A DNA stretch of 64,000 bases from Cercozoa sp. M6MM (taxonomy: Eukaryota > Protista > Endomyxa: Ascetosporea). Of this stretch, positions 544 through 26,386 are shown piece by piece (the stretch's first letter is position 1; each line of letters opens with the position of its first letter). The notes under the pieces were generated by a model. The model was not told where the DNA came from, did not search any database, and saw nothing but the letters and a program-made list of their open reading frames with translations. The position numbers were made by a program, and so were the translations under genes. Location of the stretch: the NCBI GenBank assembly GCA_040357565.1, contig JBDODJ010000012.1; one strand, given 5' to 3'.

Positions 544-2734
544 ATGTTTCCGCCGATTCAAGAAGCGCCAGTCAGGCGTAAGAAAGTCCTGGTTCGTCGC
601 AAGCACGCAAGCCAAGAGCACGCAAGCCAGGGGGCTTTGACAGCCAACAGTGCTGTTATTGATGAGCGACTGTTTCCGTCACATACCACGCGGCGCCACA
701 AATTGCTCGCGAGAAAACTAGAAGCTAAAGAACTCGCTGACGTCGGTTTCCAGGTTGAAGTTGGAGAGAATCTACTTCGAAGACGAATGCAGAATGTGCC
801 ATTTGATTCAATTCCACTTGCCTCGCGGCGTGAACATGAATTGCTAGGCACTTCGCGAGAGTACGAAGAAAGCCAGCTTCTTCATCGACCCGAACTGTTG
901 CAAAAGTCGCCGAGAGATCAGAAGCACGCTGTTGCGGCCGGTTTCATGCGAAGAAAACGACTCCAGGCATGGCGGCACGCCGTTGCGGCCACAATGGTAA
1001 GCGAAGATAGGCGAAATATCGCAACTTGAAATGCTGCGCAGATTATGAATCGAGCTGACCGCCGAAGGAGAACGCGATGGGTCGGAGTTGCGACGGAGCT
1101 TGAGAACAAGCTTGAGCAAAAATCGCTCAGTACCCTCCTCGAGTACGATAAAACCCAGTCTGTGTCGAGTGATTGAAAACAAACGCAGAAAATTTGCTTC
1201 TAACAGCGCCGACCGTCGGTATTACGACCGTGAGAGGCGCGTGTTGCATCGGCACGCTAAACGAGAACGGTCATGGCGTCGAGTCAAAGAAGACCTTGCC
1301 CGAAAGACCAATCGCAATGTTTCCGAGTTATCCATCGAAAAGGTACTGTGCTTCAGTGTGTGTTTCAAACATTACAGCAACTAAAAATGCGCAAGCAGGC
1401 AGATGCTTGGCGCCAAGAAGTGGAAGAAGCAGATTTAATCGTAAAGGCCGTGCCACATGAAGAACGATACTCAGCGTCTGTGTTTGAGCAAAGTCTCCGC
1501 AATGGCGGTGAGAGGATTGTCCCACTTGGCTCTGTTTTTAGTGGTCTTGTCGTGAAAGTCAAGCCCGAGATCAATCCTTTGCCGGAAACTGTTCGAAAAG
1601 TCGGAGGTGCGAAGCTAGAGACACTTAAGTCGAAGCACATGCAGTTTCGAAATGCTCGGTAAACTCAATGGGGTCATCTTCCTTGCTTGCATGTGATGCT
1701 TAAGTTCAGACGAAAGGAGCTTGGGGAGAGAATTACAAAATTGCGTCCGTACGATCTTGAGCATGCAGACGACTTAATTGTTGAGGGGCAGACTCTGATC
1801 TCTTTTTCTGCTCGTCGCTTACCTCGATACCAGTAAGTTTTAATATACGCTATTTAGATGGTATCATCGTGTAAATTTAAACCTGGGCATGACGAGCTCA
1901 TCACGTTTCTGTGTGTTCCTTTGCAGCTGTTGGGAGGAGATCGAACGACATCTGGCATCAAGATCATGTGAGGACATTTTCCTCAAGGAACCGAGTTCGG
2001 TTTCACTCGATCTGCTTCGCCGCGAGCGACCTGCGCAGCAGACGCAACCCAGCCACTTCTCGGCGAGCGCTTCTTCTGCTGGAGCCACTGCACCGGTTGA
2101 AGTGCCAGCCCTGAGTACCGATGTTCTCAGCATCGGTATATCATGCGCAAGCGATGAGATTACAATCGGCCAAAAGATCACCATAACAAACACTTCGGAT
2201 ACCTTCATTTCTGCAACTGCATCGGTGACGCAGCCACGTGGTTGTTTCCTCATTCGAGTCTTTCCTTCGAAGTTCGAATTGTTGCCGGGGAGTGCCATCA
2301 TACTAAACGCCACATTTTGGCCAACGTCCCTCGGATTTGTCGTATCGAAGCTCAGCATCAAAGGCGGCGATTTTCAAAACGAAACCTTGTTGAAAGTGCC
2401 AATTTTCGCCAGCTGCCGAGAAAAGCGCGCCAAGCTCGCACGGTTCGAAAGCCTAGTACAGGAAGCCGTGTTTGAAAGGCTTCGGGCTGATGCTGAGACC
2501 GAGCGGTGCAGAGACGTTGTTCTAGGGGCAGTCGAGGGTGCGCTTCGAACGCACAGAGAATTCTCAAATATCCGCGAGAAGGTCCTCACATTCGTGCGTG
2601 CAAATGACGCCGACAGGTTGAAATGGGATGCAAAGTGGTTTGAGGCATACGAAAGAATCATAGAAGAAGGCGCGGAAGCCGTGATGTCGAAGCGAGAACA
2701 AGCAATCGCTCAACGTGACGTCCTGTACAAGTAA
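544..2734 (+). CDS. MYCBP-associated protein (MYCBPAP)-like, multi-exon
   Basis: Spliced segment SWRRVKEDLARKTNRNVSELSIEK/ADAWRQEVEEADLIVKAVP...LGSVFSGLVVK resembles the MYCBPAP conserved block. Ig/ASH-like stretch ITITNTSD...FELLPG...FWPTSLG in the last exon. Stop at 2732-2734. Confidence 0.65.
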
Positions 2735-2836
2735 AACCCGATTTCTGGTCTGCTTATTTGATTGAGGCTGAAACTGACTGCTTGAAAACGTAGCTCGCAC
2801 GAACTGCGCAAGCTAATTCAACTCATTCGCGATGAA

Positions 2837-4902
2837 ATGTTGCGAAGACAGCTTTTCGAGAAACTCGACGCTGTTGTTGCAGAGTTGCAACGGCCGTATC
2901 CGTGTAAAGGTGCGGTTGGAGCAGTTTTAAAGAAGACGCTCCTCCGAGTGTGCCAGTCTGTACCCGCTCACGCTTCTCTTGGGCGAAGTGAGGAGGAGAT
3001 TCTTTCACGAACAGGTAATCTCTTTTATTTTAATCAGTTGAATAATCTTCGTACCGACATTCACACAGAGGAATGCCTCGCCAAAGCTATAGACGATTAT
3101 GACAGAAGCGTGTGGCTGCAGTTCGATGAAACTGGCCGTTTGGAGGAGTACTCAAAAACGCAGAAGAAGATGCAAAAGAAGCTCTGTCGAAGGCTCCCCG
3201 AACTGCTTCCGATTCTGTCGACACGCTTGTTTCGAGCGTCGGACAACACCTTTCACCAGATCGACATGGGGCCTGACTTATCCCGTGCTAAAGACAGCGA
3301 GCAGACGCACATCACTTTCTTCACGGCAGGCGACAGATTCTCTTTCATCCAGGACTCGCAGTTGCGGTGTTTTCTCGTGAACCACGAGGCGTACACTCGG
3401 CAGTTTGTCACCGCGGCAAAAGCGAGTGAAAGCCACCGACTTTCAACCGACAATCACGAAATAGCCGAAAAACCCGGAGTTGCTGACCAATGCTGTTGGC
3501 AGTTGCCATCTCTTTCAACCGGGTTCCTAGTGCGCCATGTCCGCGTGCTCCTAGAAGGCAACAACTGTGTGCTGCTTGCGGTTTGGGCACCAATGTCAGT
3601 GTTTTTTGCCACCGTGCGTTTGCGCGAAGATACTGCCATCACGATGGAGGCGTTGTCTGTGCTTTCGTTTCCTGCAAGCGCACCAGAATGGCAAAATTTC
3701 GCTAGCGTGTCGCTAGAGTCTGAGAATGAAGCCGAAAAGACTCTACGTTTGGTTGCGCTTCATGATGGACGACTAAAATACGCTGACGTCAAAATCATCA
3801 CTCGCTCTGACGGAAACTGGGAGAACCTTCAGGCTGCTGGTGAAGGTTGGGGTGATGTTGCTGCTCTCGACGAGACGGCAGCAACGATCAAATCAGTCCA
3901 CCAGTGCAACAACATTGCATTTGTTTTGACTAGCGAAAACACACTGTGGCGCTTGGAGACACGCACTCCCAACAGCGCAGAACAGTCGGGCGCAGCCGAC
4001 AAAAAACTGGTCGTCCTTCGGAAGTGGTCAATTTTGGAAGAAGCGGGAGTGATTCCACAGCTGCTGCAACGCATTTGGTCGTTTTCAAACGATATCCTCG
4101 TGCAGCACGCTACCGACGCAAGCACTGCCCTTTTATCTGTGCTTCCAGTTCGAGGCGAAGACGAGATGAAGGCAAGAATGCAGCACCTTGTAAGAGTGGA
4201 CGAAGATACCCTCATCAAATGTGCTTGGAGTGCCGTTATGCAAAGGTATCTTAAATACGCAACCGGTACATTTTTGTACCTCCAGTAATATACTCTGCTC
4301 GTCAAGAACAGCATGATTGTGTTGCAGAGCTTACATTGAAACGAAGAAGCACAAGCACTACTTGTTGCCGTTGTTACCTGACTCCAGCGAAGACGAACAA
4401 AAGCCGAAACTCAGGGAGGTCGAAACGACCAGCTTTGCATTGGATGCGGTGCACGATTTCGGACAACTGTGCCTGTTTGCTTTTCATGCAACAGGGTGAT
4501 TTCGCAGCCCGGCGCTGCAGGAACCACGATCTGACTACTGCCGCGTAAATTAGTATTTACGTAATTTACGACTGCAAGTTTACCACTGCGCGTACCCGAC
4601 GAGCCGAGGCCACGCGAGCGTATTGCAGCTATGCACTTTCTCACTCACTGTGCGCGGCCACTACCGACACAGGAGCTAGTACTGTCTTTTTTTGGTTGCT
4701 TCCAGTCGAGGCGAAATGCGGCAGCCCAGCCAATACTGCGCTGGAACAATAATTTTTATCGATAGATTCCCCGCCTGAAAGAGGTACCGGCGGCCGAAAC
4801 TAAACTTAGTGAGTTAGTTGAGTTTCTAGGAAACCAACTGCCGAAACTAAAAGCGGGCGGAAAGCTTACGACTGACAAGGCGGTTGATAAAACCTGCCGC
4901 TG
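2837..4902 (+). CDS. hypothetical protein, possible beta-propeller-like region
   Basis: 1.4 kb first exon (ORF 2837-4288) with donor at ~4246 and acceptor at 4327 continuing as AYIETKKHK.... Last exon IPRLKEVP...DKTCR*. No family recognised. Confidence 0.6.
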
Positions 4903-4941: not shown

Positions 4942-6066
4942 CTATAAGGTACTTCCCAGGAACGGGTTGCTGAAACAGTTGCTTCGCTTCACCCCAAAAA
5001 GGTAGGCCTCCAAAAAGTAGGCTGCCGTGCACACGCGAAGTCTGTAGTCCGAATCCAGCAAGTCCAGACGATAATTACTCCAGCAAGTCCTCAGGCAACT
5101 TGGCATCGTACAAACGCGGGTATCCACCCGGTACGGCACCTGCAGGAAGACAGGTACAAACCCTGGGCTTGAAATGGTGCAAGAAGATCCAGGGTGTGAC
5201 GTACGCATGCGGGCAATGTAGTCTTTGATCAGTGACTCGGCGTGTTCCATTGTGTATTCGCCCGACTGGACCTTCTGGTACACCTATACGACAGAAAGAG
5301 CGAGTGGACATCCAGCAATAGCGGCGATGAACGTACCTGCTCGAAAAGGAAGGCACGAATGACCGGGTCGAATTCGGCTACGTCCAGCGCTTTGTCACGC
5401 AGTCGTTTACCAGTGTTGTTTCTGTCCAGAGAATCCTCTAGAAAGTAGAAAAAATAACAGAGTTCGAACGCACTTTGCATGAACACCCATATCGTATCGT
5501 CTCCAATAGCGGTCAGCCTCTCTGTCACCACGACGGATCATATCCCTGCGTTCAACAAACGATTTAAACCATGTTAGTACTCAACGCGTGTGTTGTCCAC
5601 GCCAAATAAAGAACGCACCAGATGGCGTACACGCCCGTCACAGCCATCACGAAGCCGAGCTGTTTGTAGCCATGCAGCAGCACTTGCTTGAGTGTCACCA
5701 TTTTACTACCAGCCGCAACGAAAGTGACACAAAGAAAATCCTGCAAAACAAAAATCCTTACGACGCGGACTAGGGTGCTAAAGACGGCCGGCACGCTGGG
5801 AACAACACCGTATTTTTCACACACCTGCGAGACACAACGTGTAGCACTGTACGCCCTGGAAAACGCCGTCTGCACACGCGGCTCCTTTAAAAAACGGTAC
5901 CGGGACAGATGGTCCTGTCCAAAAAACATCAGCGACCACCAGTCACTCTGTGGCACTCAATTCTCGCTCGTTTGTTTTCGCTCTCCCAGAACTCGTGAGC
6001 GCTACTGTGCGAGCTCTCAAGAGTATTATTGAGGAAAAAGAAGCCTCCCAGACCTCTGCATATCAT
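4942..6066 (-). CDS. hypothetical protein with a hydrophobic segment
   Basis: Exons in ORFs 5564-5956, 5229-5531 and 4942-5283 join through GT-AG introns. Start codon uncertain. Confidence 0.5.
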
Positions 6067-6113
6067 AGGTGCAAAAGAAGATCGACGCGTAGTCCCACCA
6101 ACACAGACGCAGC

Positions 6114-7157
6114 ATGTCGTTTAAGCTCAAGAAGTTCGTACGTATGCCTTTAGTTGAGTGTGTGCTGTGATTTTGCGCCGTTTTCTTGTGCCGTTTTTAT
6201 TGGGTCCGAGTCGAGTGAACAGTGAACCGGTTGTGTTTTTCGGTTTTCAAGTGACCTACCCTCTTTCCCATGGGGCTTTTCGTGTAGGTCGCGGCCAAGA
6301 TGACCGGCAGCAAGGCCGGCCGCAAGCAGATTATTAAAGTTATGGGCGAAGACGGCGCGCAGCTGGTGAAGCTCTTCACCGACATTGTTGAGATGCACTC
6401 GGACACTGCCACGGCGGAGAAGATGGAGAAGTACATCTTCAAGATTGCCGCCAAGATGCGCGTCTTTTCCGACGAAGGCAAGGTCACGGACGCACAGTTC
6501 AAGCCTATCCGCATGCCTGCCAAGGGTACAGTTGCGTTAGCGTGATGATTGGTTGTATGTCAACTGTGTGTTGTGCTTGTTTAGGCTTCTTGAAGTCGCT
6601 CGCGGATGGTCAGTGGGAGCTCGACGCCGCGCGCGCTCAGCTGGGCGAGGTGCACACGGGTCTGATCGCAGTGATGGAGCCGCTGGTGACGGGTGACTCA
6701 ATTCCGCGCCTCAACTTCATCTTTGAGTACCTGCGTGACTCTGACTTGGTTCGTTTGTTCGCTTCTAGCTGATGCCACATGTTGTCGGTGTGATATGTTG
6801 TCGATGTGTGTGTGTGTGTGCGCAGTTGGACAAGCTTCTCAGCGATGCCGAGTACGCCGCTGCCAAGGACGCGTTGGCGACCACGCTGTCGGACGTGATC
6901 GACTTTGAGGAGCTCAGCGAGCTCGGCGACAACGAGCAGGAGATCAAGTCGGTAGCTCTCACACCTGCTACTCGAGCCTTCACTTGCTTACACACGTCTT
7001 GTGTTGCAGGTGCGAGTTGAGGCCAACCTGGACGCCAAGATGGCCTCTGTTGTTGACACGATCAAGACCTACTGGAAGAAGGTTGGACAGACCGAGACCG
7101 AGATTGGCGAGCCGATGATGGCGGCCTTCCTCGAGGAGAACCCTGGTATGTGTGCTG

Positions 7158-7208
<51 letters not shown>

Positions 7209-7591
7209 ATTGTTTGGTGATTGTTTCGTGCTGTGCGTAGAGCTGCGTCCTCTGTTCGAGAACACGGATTCGCAGGACTTCTCGTGGTGCTGGCTCTACG
7301 GCATCAACTCGCTGCAGCGACTGGTGTCGCGCCTGCAGGAGTACACGTACGGCCTGAAGCTTGCACACGAGCGTGAGGTGCCCGAAGCGACGTACGACAA
7401 GATGCTCGAGTTCTTCTGCAACTACCAGAAGGAGAAGTTTGGTACTCTTGTCCGCTATTTCCAGATTCCTTTTGTCGTTTTGAATGTTTCGCTGTGTCAA
7501 CGCAGGCCGTGCGTTCGGCAAGCGTGTCAAGTTCAGCTTCACCACGCTGTTCAACATTTTGGCCGAGCCGTTCAAGCAGCACGGTGTCTAA
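6114..7591 (+). CDS. TNFAIP8/TIPE-domain protein fused to a C-terminal globin domain (7 exons)
   Basis: Spliced: MSFKLKKF|VAAKMTGSKAGRKQIIKVMGEDG...AEKMEKYIFKIAAKMRVF...LVTGDSIPRLNFIFEYLRDSDL|LDKLL... (TNFAIP8 pattern). Then VDTIKTYWKKV..EIGEPMMAAFLEENP|ELRPLF..LKLAHEREVPEATYDKM..KF|GRAFGKRVKFSFTTLFNILAEPFKQHGV* (globin helices A-H). All six introns are GT-AG and preserve frame. Confidence 0.85.
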
Positions 7592-7840
7592 ACCAAGCAA
7601 CCTGACTGTTCCACTTACCCTCGTCCGCGCAAGTTTGCATCCACGGGGCTGGTTGACCTTTGTGCCTGCTGAAAGCTGCCGTCGCGTGCTTTGTTGATCG
7701 TCCGCTGGCAAAAGCAGAGTCGGTAGTATCGTATCGTGATTTAAACTGAACTTATTGACTAACACACTCCCGGACAGTTCAGCGTCAGCGCTACATGTAC
7801 AGTAGCTTAGCTATTGTTATAATCAGAATCGAATGTTCAA

Positions 7841-9231
7841 TTAAACAACAGAGGGCCCAACGTCCTCCTCCCTGGTACTAGCATTGTCAGATCGTTCGGC
7901 CGTACCCGACTCGGCCGGCGGCACCTCATCCTCGTTGTCGTCATCGTCGTTGTTGTCGTTGTCTTCTAGTTCGAGAAGATCCTCCTGCTGCAGAAAGTGT
8001 CGTACATCACGCGACATGAGCTGCCGCTTTTCGATGTCGTTTTGATCGCAGACTTCGTCGTCGACGTCGTCCTGAACACGTGGACACATATCGATGCATT
8101 GAGCAAAGCCACGAATGGGCCAAGAGGTGGATTAAGAAGCGTTTCGGACCTGCTGCTCGAGGTCAAACACGGCACGGAAGCCGTTGGAGAACACAAGCTC
8201 GGCGTATCGACGGTCATCGTCGAGACTCGCATCGTCATCACTGCGTGTGGTACATTGGCATATTGCTGTTGATACAGCAAGGAAAATGTACGAGTCGGCG
8301 TAGTGCTCGTCACGTGTGACATCCCATTGCAGCTGCAGTTGCTTCAGTAGCATGGCCGTGTGCCACACGTTCCACACCTCGGTGCCGTTGATAGAGACGA
8401 GGCGTTGCTCCTCGATACTCGACATGTGTTGGTTCTACAGTTTTGTGCCAACACATCAACACACAGACACAGACACAGACACAGACACAGAGACACGGAC
8501 ACACAGACACACAGACACACCGCAGACAGATCAGATCTGGTACCGCTTGGATCACGAGTGTACGCGAAACCGTCACTGCGGGGGACACAACAAACCGTAT
8601 ACATCATGCATCGGTGTGACGAAAAGGAAGTACCCAACTCAAAGTTCATGTCATTGAACCTGTCGTCCAGTTCGCCCAAAGGCTAAGTCAAGTCCGACCA
8701 TACACCATAAATCTTTAAAGGCACAGGTGTTTACACTCACTCGTTCCCCTGATACCAAGGTGGGTCGCTGCGTCAGCTCGCGCAGGTGCTCGAAGGCACC
8801 GGTGTGCCGCGTGAAGTACTTGAACATCGAAGGCGACTTGTGATACGGCGCCATCAACGGTTCCGACAGACGCGTCAGCACGATGCCGCCAAACACGACG
8901 TAGGACGACTGATGATCGTACTCGTAAGCTGGACGGTTTCGCGCTGGTTCGCACAGAGTCACATTGACCTCACGTTCTTCCTGGACAGCACTTCTCCAGA
9001 GTCGCAGTGTCACCGTGTCGCCCACGTGCTTGCGTTGCACCATGTAGCCAAAGTGCACTGGCGTCTCCAGTTCTTTGTGCAAACATCAAGACATCATGGC
9101 AGGGGTAAGATTGCACACGCACCTGGCGTACGAACGCGACCATCGCTGCGAATGTCGCAACCGTCCACTTTTAGCAGCACATCACCTACCTGCGTGTGAG
9201 TGAGTGTGTATGTATGCATGTGTGTTGTATG

Positions 9232-22959: not shown

Positions 22960-23494
22960 TTTAGCTTAGTAATTCGGCGACGACCTTGTGCTGTCCGCAA
23001 AGCAACACGAATCCCAGAGCCCACAACAGCAACACAGGGACCCATAGCCTACAGGTTCAACCCAGTTGTCCTACAACACCGTGTATGTAGTGCAAGCAGC
23101 GAGAAAATACCACAATGAGCTCAAGCGGATCTCATTGGCTTCATTCTTGCGAAACAAGTCGTTTCCGTCATTGGCCCGGTCGGCGAAGCTTTTTCGTTTG
23201 TCACTGCTTACTTGAAGCTGAGGAGTTCGCGTTTTCTTAATTCGACGAACAGGAGACGGTGCACCGATATGCCGCGACCTTCTGTACGACCTTGTGTCGT
23301 ACGTATCACTGTAGTGAAAACTCTCGAGACTCGATTCGGACGACGACGCCGCGTGCGCTGCCATCAGCAAGGACAGTGTCAATGTCAACACCAAGTTTGA
23401 TCTGGGACACATGCGCTACTATCAAAGCAGGGCCTGCTGCAGGGTTGACCGTTACTTGAGATTTAATTGGCCTCAATGTCCGAATCCACCACAT
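22960..23494 (-). CDS. small hypothetical secreted/membrane protein
   Basis: ORF 23071-23412 with signal-like LVLTLTLSLLMAAHAA. A possible terminal hydrophobic exon (LWVPVLLLWALGFVLL) lies near 22960-23050. Confidence 0.35.
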
Positions 23495-23623
23495 GCTCTC
23501 TACTTTTCAAATGTTAAACGCCAACGCTGGCATGGCTCACTATGACTGTACTAATGCACAGCAGGGCGTTCATCAGATGCCTATAAAAACAATGGCCGGC
23601 GGGAGTTGACTTGGTTAAGGAAG

Positions 23624-24985
23624 CACTTGATGGCTCAGGGTGAGTGTTCGGAGAGAGTGCTGTTTCAGAGTGAATTATAAGAATTTATAATGAGCTCAGT
23701 ACTGGTCGAATACACATTAGCACAGGAGCTGAGCTTTTGAGAGCGGTAAACGCGGTTTCACGTGTGCTTGGCTTTCTGCCGTTGTAGTTTTCTCTGTTAG
23801 TTAGTACTGTTGCGCAACTGTGCACAGGGCACCCTGTAGTGCCCTGCACTACATTAGTGGCTTAAATCATGATAAACGCCGCGGAGTCGCTGAAGAGAAA
23901 AATTGTTAATTTTTCTCTTGGGACGAAGACGATGAAGCACTTTTTAAACTTTCAAGAAGCGTCGCCGGTGCTGGGATTCGCGGCTCGGTTAGCTCGATTT
24001 CTTGCAAGTTCGCTTTTCCATGTGACTATCTGTTCTATCCATGCACTGACATGACACGTCACTTCACCGTGCGTCAGCCGTCCTTGGTCAACCGACGGCT
24101 GTGCACCAAAGCCCTCGCATCTTCGCCAACACAAACGCAACAGACCACTGCTTCGCGTTCGGTCCTTGCGAAATACTACAACGGGTACGTTGCACCTATT
24201 TACTCTCACTAGTACGTGTAGTATATTTAAGTACTGAGTTTCAATAAGAGTTGGACTGATCATTTGGACAGAGTAAACAGACGTAAAGCAGTCGCATTCA
24301 CGCGAAAGAAGACCTCGTGTCCTTTCGTTGTGCACAAACTGTCCTTTCGTTGTGCACAAACTGCACACCAAGGATTGGTGCCCGTACCGTCGCTGGCGCA
24401 GACCGCGATGCGTGTCGCTGCCACTGACAATGTAGTCTCAGACATTGACTGCCTTTGTTTCGATACTTCTGCATGCTGTGTACAGGTTGTATCACGCGGC
24501 AGGCCGATTGCCACTGCACAAGCTGCTGGCAGACTTCTCGACCGCCGATGACACCCCCACGCTGGTGCTCCTGTCCACTAATTTGCAAGTATGAACACTT
24601 ATGAATCTCATCATTTCTGTAGATAAGCTCGCAGAGTGGCAGCGAGCCGCTCCTACTCGCAGTGAAGCGACGCCGGCCATACATGAAGAAAAAATACGTG
24701 CCAAAGCCGCCGCCCATTCCGCCCGATCTTCAAGACATCTTTAGGAACTGATCATCGGTCTGTACTGAGATGGTTCTTAACGTTTTAAACCCGCTCGTAA
24801 CCTCGGAAAGCCACGTACTCGAGAACCAAAAAGATAACACGCTCATCGTGCTGTACTGGGTTACCTAAATTCGAAATTAGAAAGCCCACGCGACGCAAGT
24901 GGGTATAAGCACACACTCAAACCTAGCATTAGGTCAAAGCAGCGGGGTACAGTTTTGGGACTTCGCCAGAACAAGTCAATTTTTT
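23624..24985 (+). repeat. ~1.3 kb dispersed repeat, copy 1 (inverted relative to 58665-59978)
   Basis: Long near-identical blocks in reverse complement, e.g. 24917 ctcaaacctagcattaggtcaaagcagcggggtacag vs 58700-58736, and 23661 tgtttcagagtgaattataagaatttataatgagctcagtactgg vs 59840-59884. Confidence 0.95.
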
Positions 24986-25175
24986 GCATTCAAGTGGAAG
25001 CTGCTTGGGTTGCTGGGAGAGCACTGTACTGTACAGTACACTACAGCAGTGCCTGAATCGTGCAAACATATACTTGTAGCGCTTAGAGGTATTTATTGAG
25101 GAATGTAGCAGTGCGTGCAACATTGTCTGTGGTGTGTTTCGTGTGTCTGCTGAAGGTGTGTGTCTGTGCAGTTAA

Positions 25176-26386
25176 ATGGGCCAGGTGCAGTCGGGCAGCA
25201 GCAAAGGCGGCCGCACGCAGCAGCAGCGACGGCAAAAGCCGCGCGAGCAGCGACAGCGCGAGAAAGAGCAGCAGCAGCAGAAACAGGAGCAGCCAGAGCA
25301 GCAACAAGAGCAGCAACAACAAGAGCAGCAGCCACAAGAGCGACGCAGTTCGGCGAAGCGCGTGCGCGATGACGACACCGAGCGTGATGACGATGACAGC
25401 GACGACGTCATCGAGGAGCCCGGCATCGAGGACGTCGATGACGACGACGAGGACGACATTCTCATTGAGGACGATGTCAGTGAGGTACCTCTCTTTCCCC
25501 TTTACCCCCTGCCTTCCATCCCTTTGTGTCTATGCGAAGGAGCTGTCGCGCACGCAGCGCCGTCGGCGCGTGATTGCGCCGGACTCGCGCGGTCGCCGGC
25601 GTCGACCGAGGTACCCGTGCTAGCACCGTGTAATATATTCAAGAATACCCCCCCCCCCCGTAGACCGCATGTCGATGCTGAGCTGATCGACATGGAAGAC
25701 GAAGACAAACAGACCGACGATGTGGTACATTCTTGGTGCTTGTGTCATGGTGTGTGTGTGTGTGTACCGAGAGGAAGTTCATATGAAGTCGAGAAAGTCG
25801 AGGAAACGCAAACCGCACACTGTTGTGGTAGCTATAAATACGGGAGGAGGTAAAGTGAGCGGAGCTACGATGCCGTTGTGTGACAGAGGAAAGTGCTCGT
25901 ATGGAAACACGGCGGTAACGACGTCTATGTCGCCGGCACTTGGTGTGTTGAGATCTCTTAACTTACCTCTCCGTGTTATATAGCCATGGCATGACGATGC
26001 GTTGACAGGGACGACATGGAAGCACGTGTCAAGCTAAACCGACGCGCCAATGGCACCTTCAGGTAGTCCTATTTCTCCTTCCTCATCTCTGCACTCATAC
26101 TCTGTATGTGCACAACAGTGCAACCCTCGCATTGCCTGCTCCGGCCACTTTCGACTACCGTTACGTCGTTGATGGACAGGAACGGCATGCCGTTGACCAG
26201 GTGCAGAACCTTACTGCCTACCCTGTTCCTTACTTTACCCATCCCCTGGCTCCCCTCTGTACAGGCCGTGGTAGACATCGATGGCGTGCTGTTCAACCGC
26301 GTGACTACTGCCGTCGGCGAGAATGACGCCGTCATCCAGCAGGAGGACGAGTACGGCTGCGAGATTCCCAACGAAGGTACCTGTGT

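Follow-up and report, generated by a model that had tools for sequence, protein, structure and literature searches.

A TNFAIP8/TIPE-like domain fused to a globin domain in a rhizarian amoeba: a candidate lipid-tethered haem protein

Chimeric globins have revealed uses of the haem domain that extend beyond oxygen transport. In the globin-coupled sensors, an N-terminal globin of the S family precedes a C-terminal output domain, which is either enzymatic or of the methyl-accepting chemotaxis protein (MCP) type (PMC7475203). Proteins of the TNFAIP8/TIPE family, which possess a lipid cavity, regulate cell polarity and migration, and little is understood of their partners. The binding of phosphoinositides by TNFAIP8 requires the lysines K17, K18, K22 and K26 of its alpha0 helix (bioRxiv 10.1101/2021.03.26.437243). 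In Gip1, which associates a PH domain with a TIPE-like domain, the cavity accommodates the geranylgeranyl group of G-gamma (PMC6219514). The present work describes a gene in which these two kinds of domain are combined, a TIPE-like domain being followed by a globin domain in the same protein. The gene occupies positions 6114-7591 of the plus strand of a 64,000-nucleotide stretch of DNA (hereafter the window), which corresponds to positions 62001-126000 of contig C12 (JBDODJ010000012.1) in the 23.6-Mb, 2235-contig draft assembly GCA_040357565.1 of Cercozoa sp. M6MM. This organism is an amphizoic marine amoeba of fish-gill origin belonging to the Apofilosa (Rhizaria) (PMC11069148) and was later named Lemnamoeba sinaloensis (PMC13746701).

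The gene consists of seven exons which, once spliced in frame, yield a coding sequence of 975 nucleotides, that is 324 codons followed by a TAA stop codon. Its six introns, 58 to 150 nucleotides long, all display GT..AG ends and have compatible phases. This structure had been proposed in the initial annotation and was borne out by the public record, as the model is identical, exon by exon, to the GenBank proteins MES1907972.1 and MES1907974.1 ('hypothetical protein MHM6MM_000992', 324 residues). The exon translations occupy residues 1-8, 9-87, 89-142, 143-184, 185-229, 231-296 and 298-324 of MES1907972.1, and the three one-residue gaps between them (residues 88, 230 and 297) are split codons. 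One gene encodes one two-domain protein of 324 residues, composed of a TIPE-like domain, an acidic linker and a globin domain in which CD1 is occupied by Phe235 and F8, or a position beside it, by His272. The linker, approximately 20 residues long and located at about 6892-6951, reads DVIDFEELSELGDNEQEIKS. Splicing of intron 1 and transcription of the locus from at least position 6009 are confirmed by a 268-nucleotide contig of one probable RNA run, which spans 6009-6137 and 6288-6426 with a joint at 6137->6288. The homology searches reported below were performed either with the exons taken singly or with the database proteins of 324 and 312 residues that derive from this gene. The search with exon 6 retrieved the 312-residue form, 100% identical, the 324-residue form being a member of the same cluster.

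The N-terminal domain, residues 1 to about 165, matches the Pfam TNFAIP8 family (PF05527) with an E-value of 1.6e-8 and a score of 35.1 bits, above the cut-off of 22.5. On the 312-residue form, the match extends over residues 6-156 and covers positions 19-179 of the 181 positions of the profile, and exon 2 alone is sufficient to match profile positions 13-82 (E 6e-5, 23.4 bits). The TNFAIP8-like helical domain that had been recognized initially is thus upheld by a match above threshold over nearly the full length of the profile. Helices are predicted across residues 3-166, with a predicted local distance difference test (pLDDT) value of only 50-68 for this half of the protein, which was modelled with no alignment. 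Gip1 (5Z1N) was the sole non-globin structural relative returned by the search of PDB sequences (E 0.4). Gip1 and TIPE1 appeared as weak rows only in the Foldseek results, Gip1 being ranked first for the poor single-sequence model. The first 25 residues are rich in lysine (K4, K6, K7, K12, K17, R20, K21 and K25), and the KK...KM...K pattern of residues 6-17 resembles the alpha0 lysines of TNFAIP8. Three isoforms of the gene are listed in GenBank, for two protein forms of 324 residues (ATG at 6114) and 312 residues (ATG at 6300). In the shorter form, the basic alpha0-like segment is deprived of K4, K6, K7 and K12, and the two forms might differ in lipid binding.

The C-terminal domain was characterized by a combination of sequence and structure comparisons. 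When the 324-residue protein was compared to the PDB sequences using phmmer, the top match was Hell's Gate globin I (HGbI; 3S1I/3UBC) with an E-value of 0.0016, residues 188-306 of the query (119 residues) being aligned with positions 8-129 of the 139 positions of 3S1I. A custom profile was built from 64 globin domains gathered from Pseudomonadota genomes. Searched with this profile using hmmsearch, the C-terminal domain obtained 18.5 bits versus a maximum of 4.6 bits in 2000 shuffled sequences. Its alignment to the same profile by hhalign (95%, P 4e-8) reached a score of 46.5 over 122 collinear columns, domain positions 13-137 being paired with positions 14-142 of the 152 positions of the profile. 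The corresponding scores were 14.0 for the TIPE domain, included as a negative control, 9.6 for the reversed C-terminal domain and 21.2 for the best of 150 shuffled sequences. Most of the signal, about 38 of 46.5, originates from helices A to CD; the E-H half alone aligned helices G-H to the correct region of the profile, 96-142 (P 0.0013). Single exons searched against Pfam and the PDB sequences returned noise only, such as a lactoylglutathione lyase and a designed protein. With the Hmp flavohaemoglobin of E. coli and an enterobacterial Hmp profile, only a 17-column B-C-CD motif could be aligned by BLASTP or by hhalign.

Structural data are in agreement with these results. In the ESM Atlas, which is free of our custom alignment, the ten nearest feature neighbours are all globins (score 0.88), and the model displays a template modelling (TM) score of 0.66 over 124 residues to a 139-residue bacterial globin cluster. 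A single-sequence AlphaFold model was discarded on account of its pLDDT of 39, its Foldseek list being meaningless. Alignment with all 64 globins by MAFFT misaligned the E-F region, and a subset of 34 sequences (alignment A3) was used to produce the AlphaFold 2 (AF2) model. The latter displays pLDDT values of 84-95 in helices A, B, G and H and of 70-80 in the E-F region. Foldseek ranked 3S1I first for this model, with a TM score of 0.71 and a root-mean-square deviation (rmsd) of 3.1. When the same model was compared to 48,161 chains using VIA-align, the best 50 were all globins, the top one with a Z score of 14.0, an rmsd of 2.7 and 128 aligned residues. Z scores were 13-14 to haemoglobins and flavohaemoglobins versus 9.3-9.8 to HemAT, DosC, AfGcHK and GsGCS. 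We therefore consider it very probable that residues 185-324 adopt the globin fold, and the comparisons show the globin domain to be of the 3-on-3, bacterial single-domain/flavohaemoglobin (F) type. The initial annotation had staked its reading on the C-terminal stretch of about 140 residues, which indeed matches both a globin profile and the globin fold.

The globin motifs that had been named at the outset are all present in the expected columns, namely Trp206 in helix A, Pro229 at C2, Phe235 at CD1, His272 at F8 and Tyr281 in helix G. Phe235 falls in the invariant CD1 phenylalanine column in every alignment. His272, located in the invariant F8 column in alignment A3, is one of just two histidines in the 140-residue domain and the sole one available near F8. 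On the distal side, the tyrosine of B10 is replaced by Met221, position E7 is Phe243 in alignment A3 or Gln241 in the phmmer alignment, and Trp247 is found near E11. Judging from these residues, binding of haem by the C-terminal domain is likely. Of the two introns that interrupt the domain, one falls within the codon of Glu230, in the C helix, and the other within that of Gly297, at the G-H corner. The classical intron positions of globin genes are B12.2 and G7.0, from which we take both of these sites to differ.

The only other TNFAIP8 match of this genome (PF05527, 24.7 bits) was found on contig C35, positions 22964-26347, in a gene located at about 1218-3331 of that segment. Its TIPE-like domain starts with MSKRLKKF (shared motif MS.KLKKF) and is 31-41% identical to that of the window. 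Short in-frame introns with GT..AG ends (1930-2008 and 2153-2209) connect it to a G-alpha subunit that is complete, with its P-loop exon at 2210-2416 and a PF00503 match (E 1.5e-49) on 2834-3331. The TIPE-like module occupies the usual position of the N-terminal acylation site of G-alpha. As Gip1 binds the prenyl group of G-gamma, this module could constitute a built-in device for solubilization or anchoring. The notion that TIPE proteins are normally single-domain must accordingly be qualified, in view of both this fusion and the PH plus TIPE-like organization of Gip1 (PMC6219514). Relatives of the globin domain are concerned as well: ferric neuroglobin acts as a guanine nucleotide dissociation inhibitor for G-alpha-i at lipid rafts (PMC7475203). 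Taken together with Gip1, this links the kin of both domains of the window protein to heterotrimeric G proteins.

The reading that we favor, and to which we give about an even chance, is that of a lipid-tethered haem protein. Haem would be bound by the globin through His272, in a pocket whose distal side would be apolar and aromatic (Met221 at B10, Phe243 or Gln241 at E7, Trp247 near E11). The TIPE-like domain would dock onto a lipid, which may be a membrane phosphoinositide or the lipid group of a partner protein, and would rely for this, as TNFAIP8, TIPE3 and Gip1 do, on a basic alpha0 helix and a hydrophobic cavity. The chemistry of the haem, either ligand binding or redox change, would then take place at a lipid-signalling site or be coupled to it. 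Other globins are held at membranes by N-terminal acylation, and the TIPE-like module may substitute for this modification as it may in G-alpha. The anchoring role is suggested by the paralogous TIPE-like domain standing in front of a complete G-alpha, at the normal acylation site.

A number of observations weigh against this reading. Pfam Globin (PF00042) matches neither the single exons nor the full protein nor any locus of the genome at E <= 10, no relevant match to the protein was obtained with NCBIfam, and a profile restricted to Hmp fails on the domain. The claim of a full globin made in the initial annotation stands insofar as the custom profile, phmmer, the ESM Atlas and the AF2 fold all match, with the reservation that Pfam Globin is blind to this domain. 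The confidence of the AF2 model depends on the globin alignment that was chosen and indicates compatibility with the fold, not independent proof of it. The E-F region is poorly alignable; His272 lies one or two residues off F8 in the hhalign and phmmer alignments, and MAFFT places it at F8 in two of six subsets. One-residue deletions flanking helix F would explain this ambiguity, the spacing from CD1 to F8 being 37 residues in the amoeba protein and 39 in HGbI and that from F8 to the helix-G tyrosine 9 and 10 residues, respectively. Without Tyr B10 and Gln E7, oxygen-dependent catalysis, for example NO dioxygenation, becomes less likely, and the version of the proposal in which an enzyme is targeted to lipid is weakened accordingly. 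Conservation of the fusion could have been tested on an orthologue, and none was found in the databases searched: word-based searches among approximately 5.8 billion clustered proteins returned only the protein itself, whether the whole sequence or residues 185-324 were used, and an exhaustive HMMER search of 1.84 billion representative proteins with exon 6 yielded, besides the protein itself, just two junk proteins of repetitive sequence. Finally, the junction 6951|7010 between exons 4 and 5 is not covered by reads, the one probable RNA run examined being informative for exons 1-2 only. This last point leaves some room for two genes wrongly joined by the annotation, one coding for a TIPE-only protein that would end within 'intron 4' and the other for a separate globin of 130 residues. 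Retention of intron 4 would indeed bring in an in-frame TGA (7018-7020), 22 codons on, and the next ATG (7040, Met195) is found 20 nucleotides after it, just ahead of helix A. We nevertheless regard such a mis-joining as highly improbable. A spacing of 20 nucleotides between two coding regions is too short to accommodate a 3' end and a promoter, and two independent transcription units of a eukaryote could not fit there. Intron 4, with its GT..AG ends and its TTGCAG acceptor, is similar in length (58 nucleotides) to introns 2 and 6, and its splicing maintains the frame. Both domains are present in all three GenBank isoforms, and the public annotation was produced by the funannotate train, predict and update steps using transcriptome reads (PMC11069148). 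A similar in-frame fusion, to G-alpha, exists in the paralogue. The fusion of exons 4 and 5 is supported indirectly by the gene structure and the public annotation. As a separate observation, a transcript retaining intron 4 could in principle produce a TIPE-only protein, and initiation at the internal ATG an independent globin of 130 residues.

Two other explanations accept the fusion and differ as to the function of the globin. It might serve as a haem-based sensor, the sensing of O2, NO, CO or redox state opening or closing the TIPE-like cavity, a possibility that we hold to be real and distinctly less probable than tethering. Lipid transfer, or the release of prenylated G-gamma or of a small GTPase, might then become gas- or redox-regulated, the reading put forward in the initial annotation and one that we regard as equally tentative. 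The architecture suits this explanation as well as it suits tethering, chimeric globins are often sensors (PMC7475203), and an apolar distal pocket lacking Tyr B10 and Gln E7 would be better adapted to signalling than to oxygen chemistry. The precedents of neuroglobin with G-alpha-i and of Gip1 with G-gamma also tie the kin of both domains to G proteins (PMC7475203, PMC6219514). However, the globin of known globin-coupled sensors is N-terminal and of the S family, whereas here it is C-terminal and of the F type, and the acidic linker of about 20 residues is predicted to be flexible (pLDDT below 60) and offers no obvious allosteric route. Its domain order and globin lineage place the protein outside the family of globin-coupled sensors; gating of the TIPE-like cavity by an F-type globin, according to the ligand or redox state of the latter, would make it a eukaryotic haem sensor of new design, a doubtful though conceivable outcome. 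A degenerate globin devoid of haem, used as a helical module for protein-protein interaction or lipid binding like the non-haem globin domain of RsbR in stressosomes, seems unlikely. The unconserved distal residues, the divergent E-F region and the failure of Pfam Globin would be accounted for in that case, a stressosome N-domain (7B0U) figures among the structural matches (Z 8.9), and no other globin or flavohaemoglobin is detectable in the draft genome. Against this, Phe235 at CD1 and a histidine within one residue of F8 have been kept in a domain of 140 residues possessing only two histidines, and the best matches are haem-binding globins. A lipid-tethered haem protein remains the reading that we favor.

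The distribution of this architecture appears to be narrow. No paralogue of the globin part was found in the draft genome of the amoeba itself, and neither Pfam Globin, Pfam Bac_globin nor the custom globin profile revealed another globin-like locus there, within the limits set by exon splitting and by an incomplete assembly. The organism may thus possess no detectable globin other than the fused domain. A search for related loci with the enterobacterial Hmp profile returned Enterobacteriaceae only. Comparison of the 324-residue protein to 401 Pseudomonadota genomes produced matches at chance level, none of them in globin genes. Full-text literature searches found no paper linking TNFAIP8/TIPE with a globin domain, and the papers searched on chimeric globins list no TIPE partner. 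The initial annotation knew of no description of this fusion, in agreement with the literature and database searches. Chimeric globins and multidomain TIPE-like proteins are kinds of proteins already known; the novelty resides in their pairing, a chimeric globin with a TIPE-like partner that, in the papers and databases searched, is so far known only from a single amoeba of the Rhizaria.

The joining of a globin and a TIPE-like domain in one natural protein points to a direct tie of haem chemistry with lipid or G-protein signalling. Considered together with the TIPE-like-G-alpha fusion, it suggests that the TIPE fold is a portable N-terminal lipid-docking module in this rhizarian lineage. If the protein were a sensor, the transfer of phosphoinositides or the release of prenylated G-protein subunits would be placed under the control of O2, NO or redox state in an amoeba, as part of a rhizarian toolkit that builds TIPE-like domains into signalling proteins such as G-alpha. 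The value of these proposals is limited by the fact that the fusion is known from one species, with no orthologue, and that its function is inferred.

Table 1. Coordinates of the features of the fused gene, in positions of the window
Feature	Position	Strand	Basis or remark
5' untranslated region (UTR), minimum extent	6009..6113	+	start of the spliced RNA contig, which reads through the ATG
Exon 1: residues 1-8 (MSFKLKKF), start of the basic alpha0-like helix	6114..6137	+	missing from the 312-residue isoform
Intron 1, 150 nt, GT..AG	6138..6287	+	RNA joint 6137->6288, shorter flank of 129 letters
Exon 2: residues 9-88, N-terminal half of the TNFAIP8/TIPE domain	6288..6525	+	Pfam PF05527 match
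Exon 3: residues 88-142, central part of the TIPE domain	6585..6748	+	inside the Pfam match; 41% identical to the exon of the paralogue
Exon 4: residues 143-184, last part of the TIPE domain and acidic linker	6826..6951	+	Pfam match, translation
Intron 4, 58 nt, GTAGCT..TTGCAG; its removal fuses both domains in frame	6952..7009	+	sequence
Exon 5: residues 185-230, helices A to C of the globin	7010..7145	+	comparison with the bacterial globin profile (hhalign, hmmsearch) and alignment A3; W206, M221 (B10), P229 (C2)
Exon 6: residues 230-297, CD corner to helix G	7241..7441	+	Phe235 (CD1) at 7255-7257; candidate proximal His272 at 7366-7368
Exon 7: residues 297-324, helix H, stop codon TAA at 7589-7591	7506..7591	+	translation

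Long (GT)n microsatellites are present within intron 5 (7149-7218) and intron 3 (6806-6820) of the gene. They fit the heavy load of simple-sequence repeats of this genome, already known to be unusual (PMC13746701). The next gene of the window is on the minus strand; it ends at 7841 (open reading frame 7841-8089) and displays an acidic tail rich in Asp and Glu. The two genes form a tail-to-tail pair in which the approximately 250 nucleotides of the interval 7592-7841 are available to the two 3' UTRs.

The closest described relative of the N-terminal half is the TNFAIP8/TIPE family itself (TNFAIP8, 5JXD; TIPE2, 3F4M; TIPE3, 4Q9V), with which the amoeba protein has in common a full-length PF05527 match, about seven predicted helices and a lysine-rich alpha0-like start. 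The metazoan members are single-domain proteins of approximately 185-290 residues, whereas the amoeba protein adds a C-terminal globin of 140 residues. Dictyostelium Gip1 (5Z1N) likewise embeds a TIPE-like fold in a multidomain protist protein; its order is nevertheless an N-terminal PH domain followed by a C-terminal TIPE-like domain, while in the amoeba protein the TIPE-like domain is N-terminal and its partner is a globin. The TIPE-like-G-alpha protein encoded on contig C35 displays the same layout, an N-terminal TIPE-like domain connected through short in-frame introns to a signalling domain, and differs by the nature of the latter, G-alpha instead of globin.

On the globin side, HGbI of Methylacidiphilum infernorum is both the best sequence match and the best Foldseek match to the AF2 model. 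The two proteins share the 3-on-3 fold, a very short CD region devoid of a D helix, the CD1 phenylalanine, the F8 histidine and a Pro-x-x-x-x-x-Phe motif in the C-CD region. Identity of the amoeba domain to HGbI and the bacterial F globins is only about 11-23%, with Met221 in place of Tyr B10, an uncertain E7 and a tryptophan near E11; unlike HGbI, the amoeba domain is encoded by a eukaryotic gene in which it is interrupted by two unusually placed introns, follows another domain in the same protein and is missed by Pfam Globin. N-acylated membrane-bound globins, such as vertebrate globin X, are held at the membrane by a myristoyl or palmitoyl group. The analogy with these is functional only, as the amoeba protein would be tethered by a folded lipid-binding domain, and no sequence kinship is implied. 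Globin-coupled sensors (HemAT, AfGcHK, DosC), flavohaemoglobin and androglobin share with the amoeba protein the covalent linkage of a globin to a domain of another kind. The globins of the sensors superpose on that of the amoeba with Z scores of 9.3-9.8; the latter is instead of the F type, C-terminal (residues 185-324) and associated with a putative lipid-binding domain.

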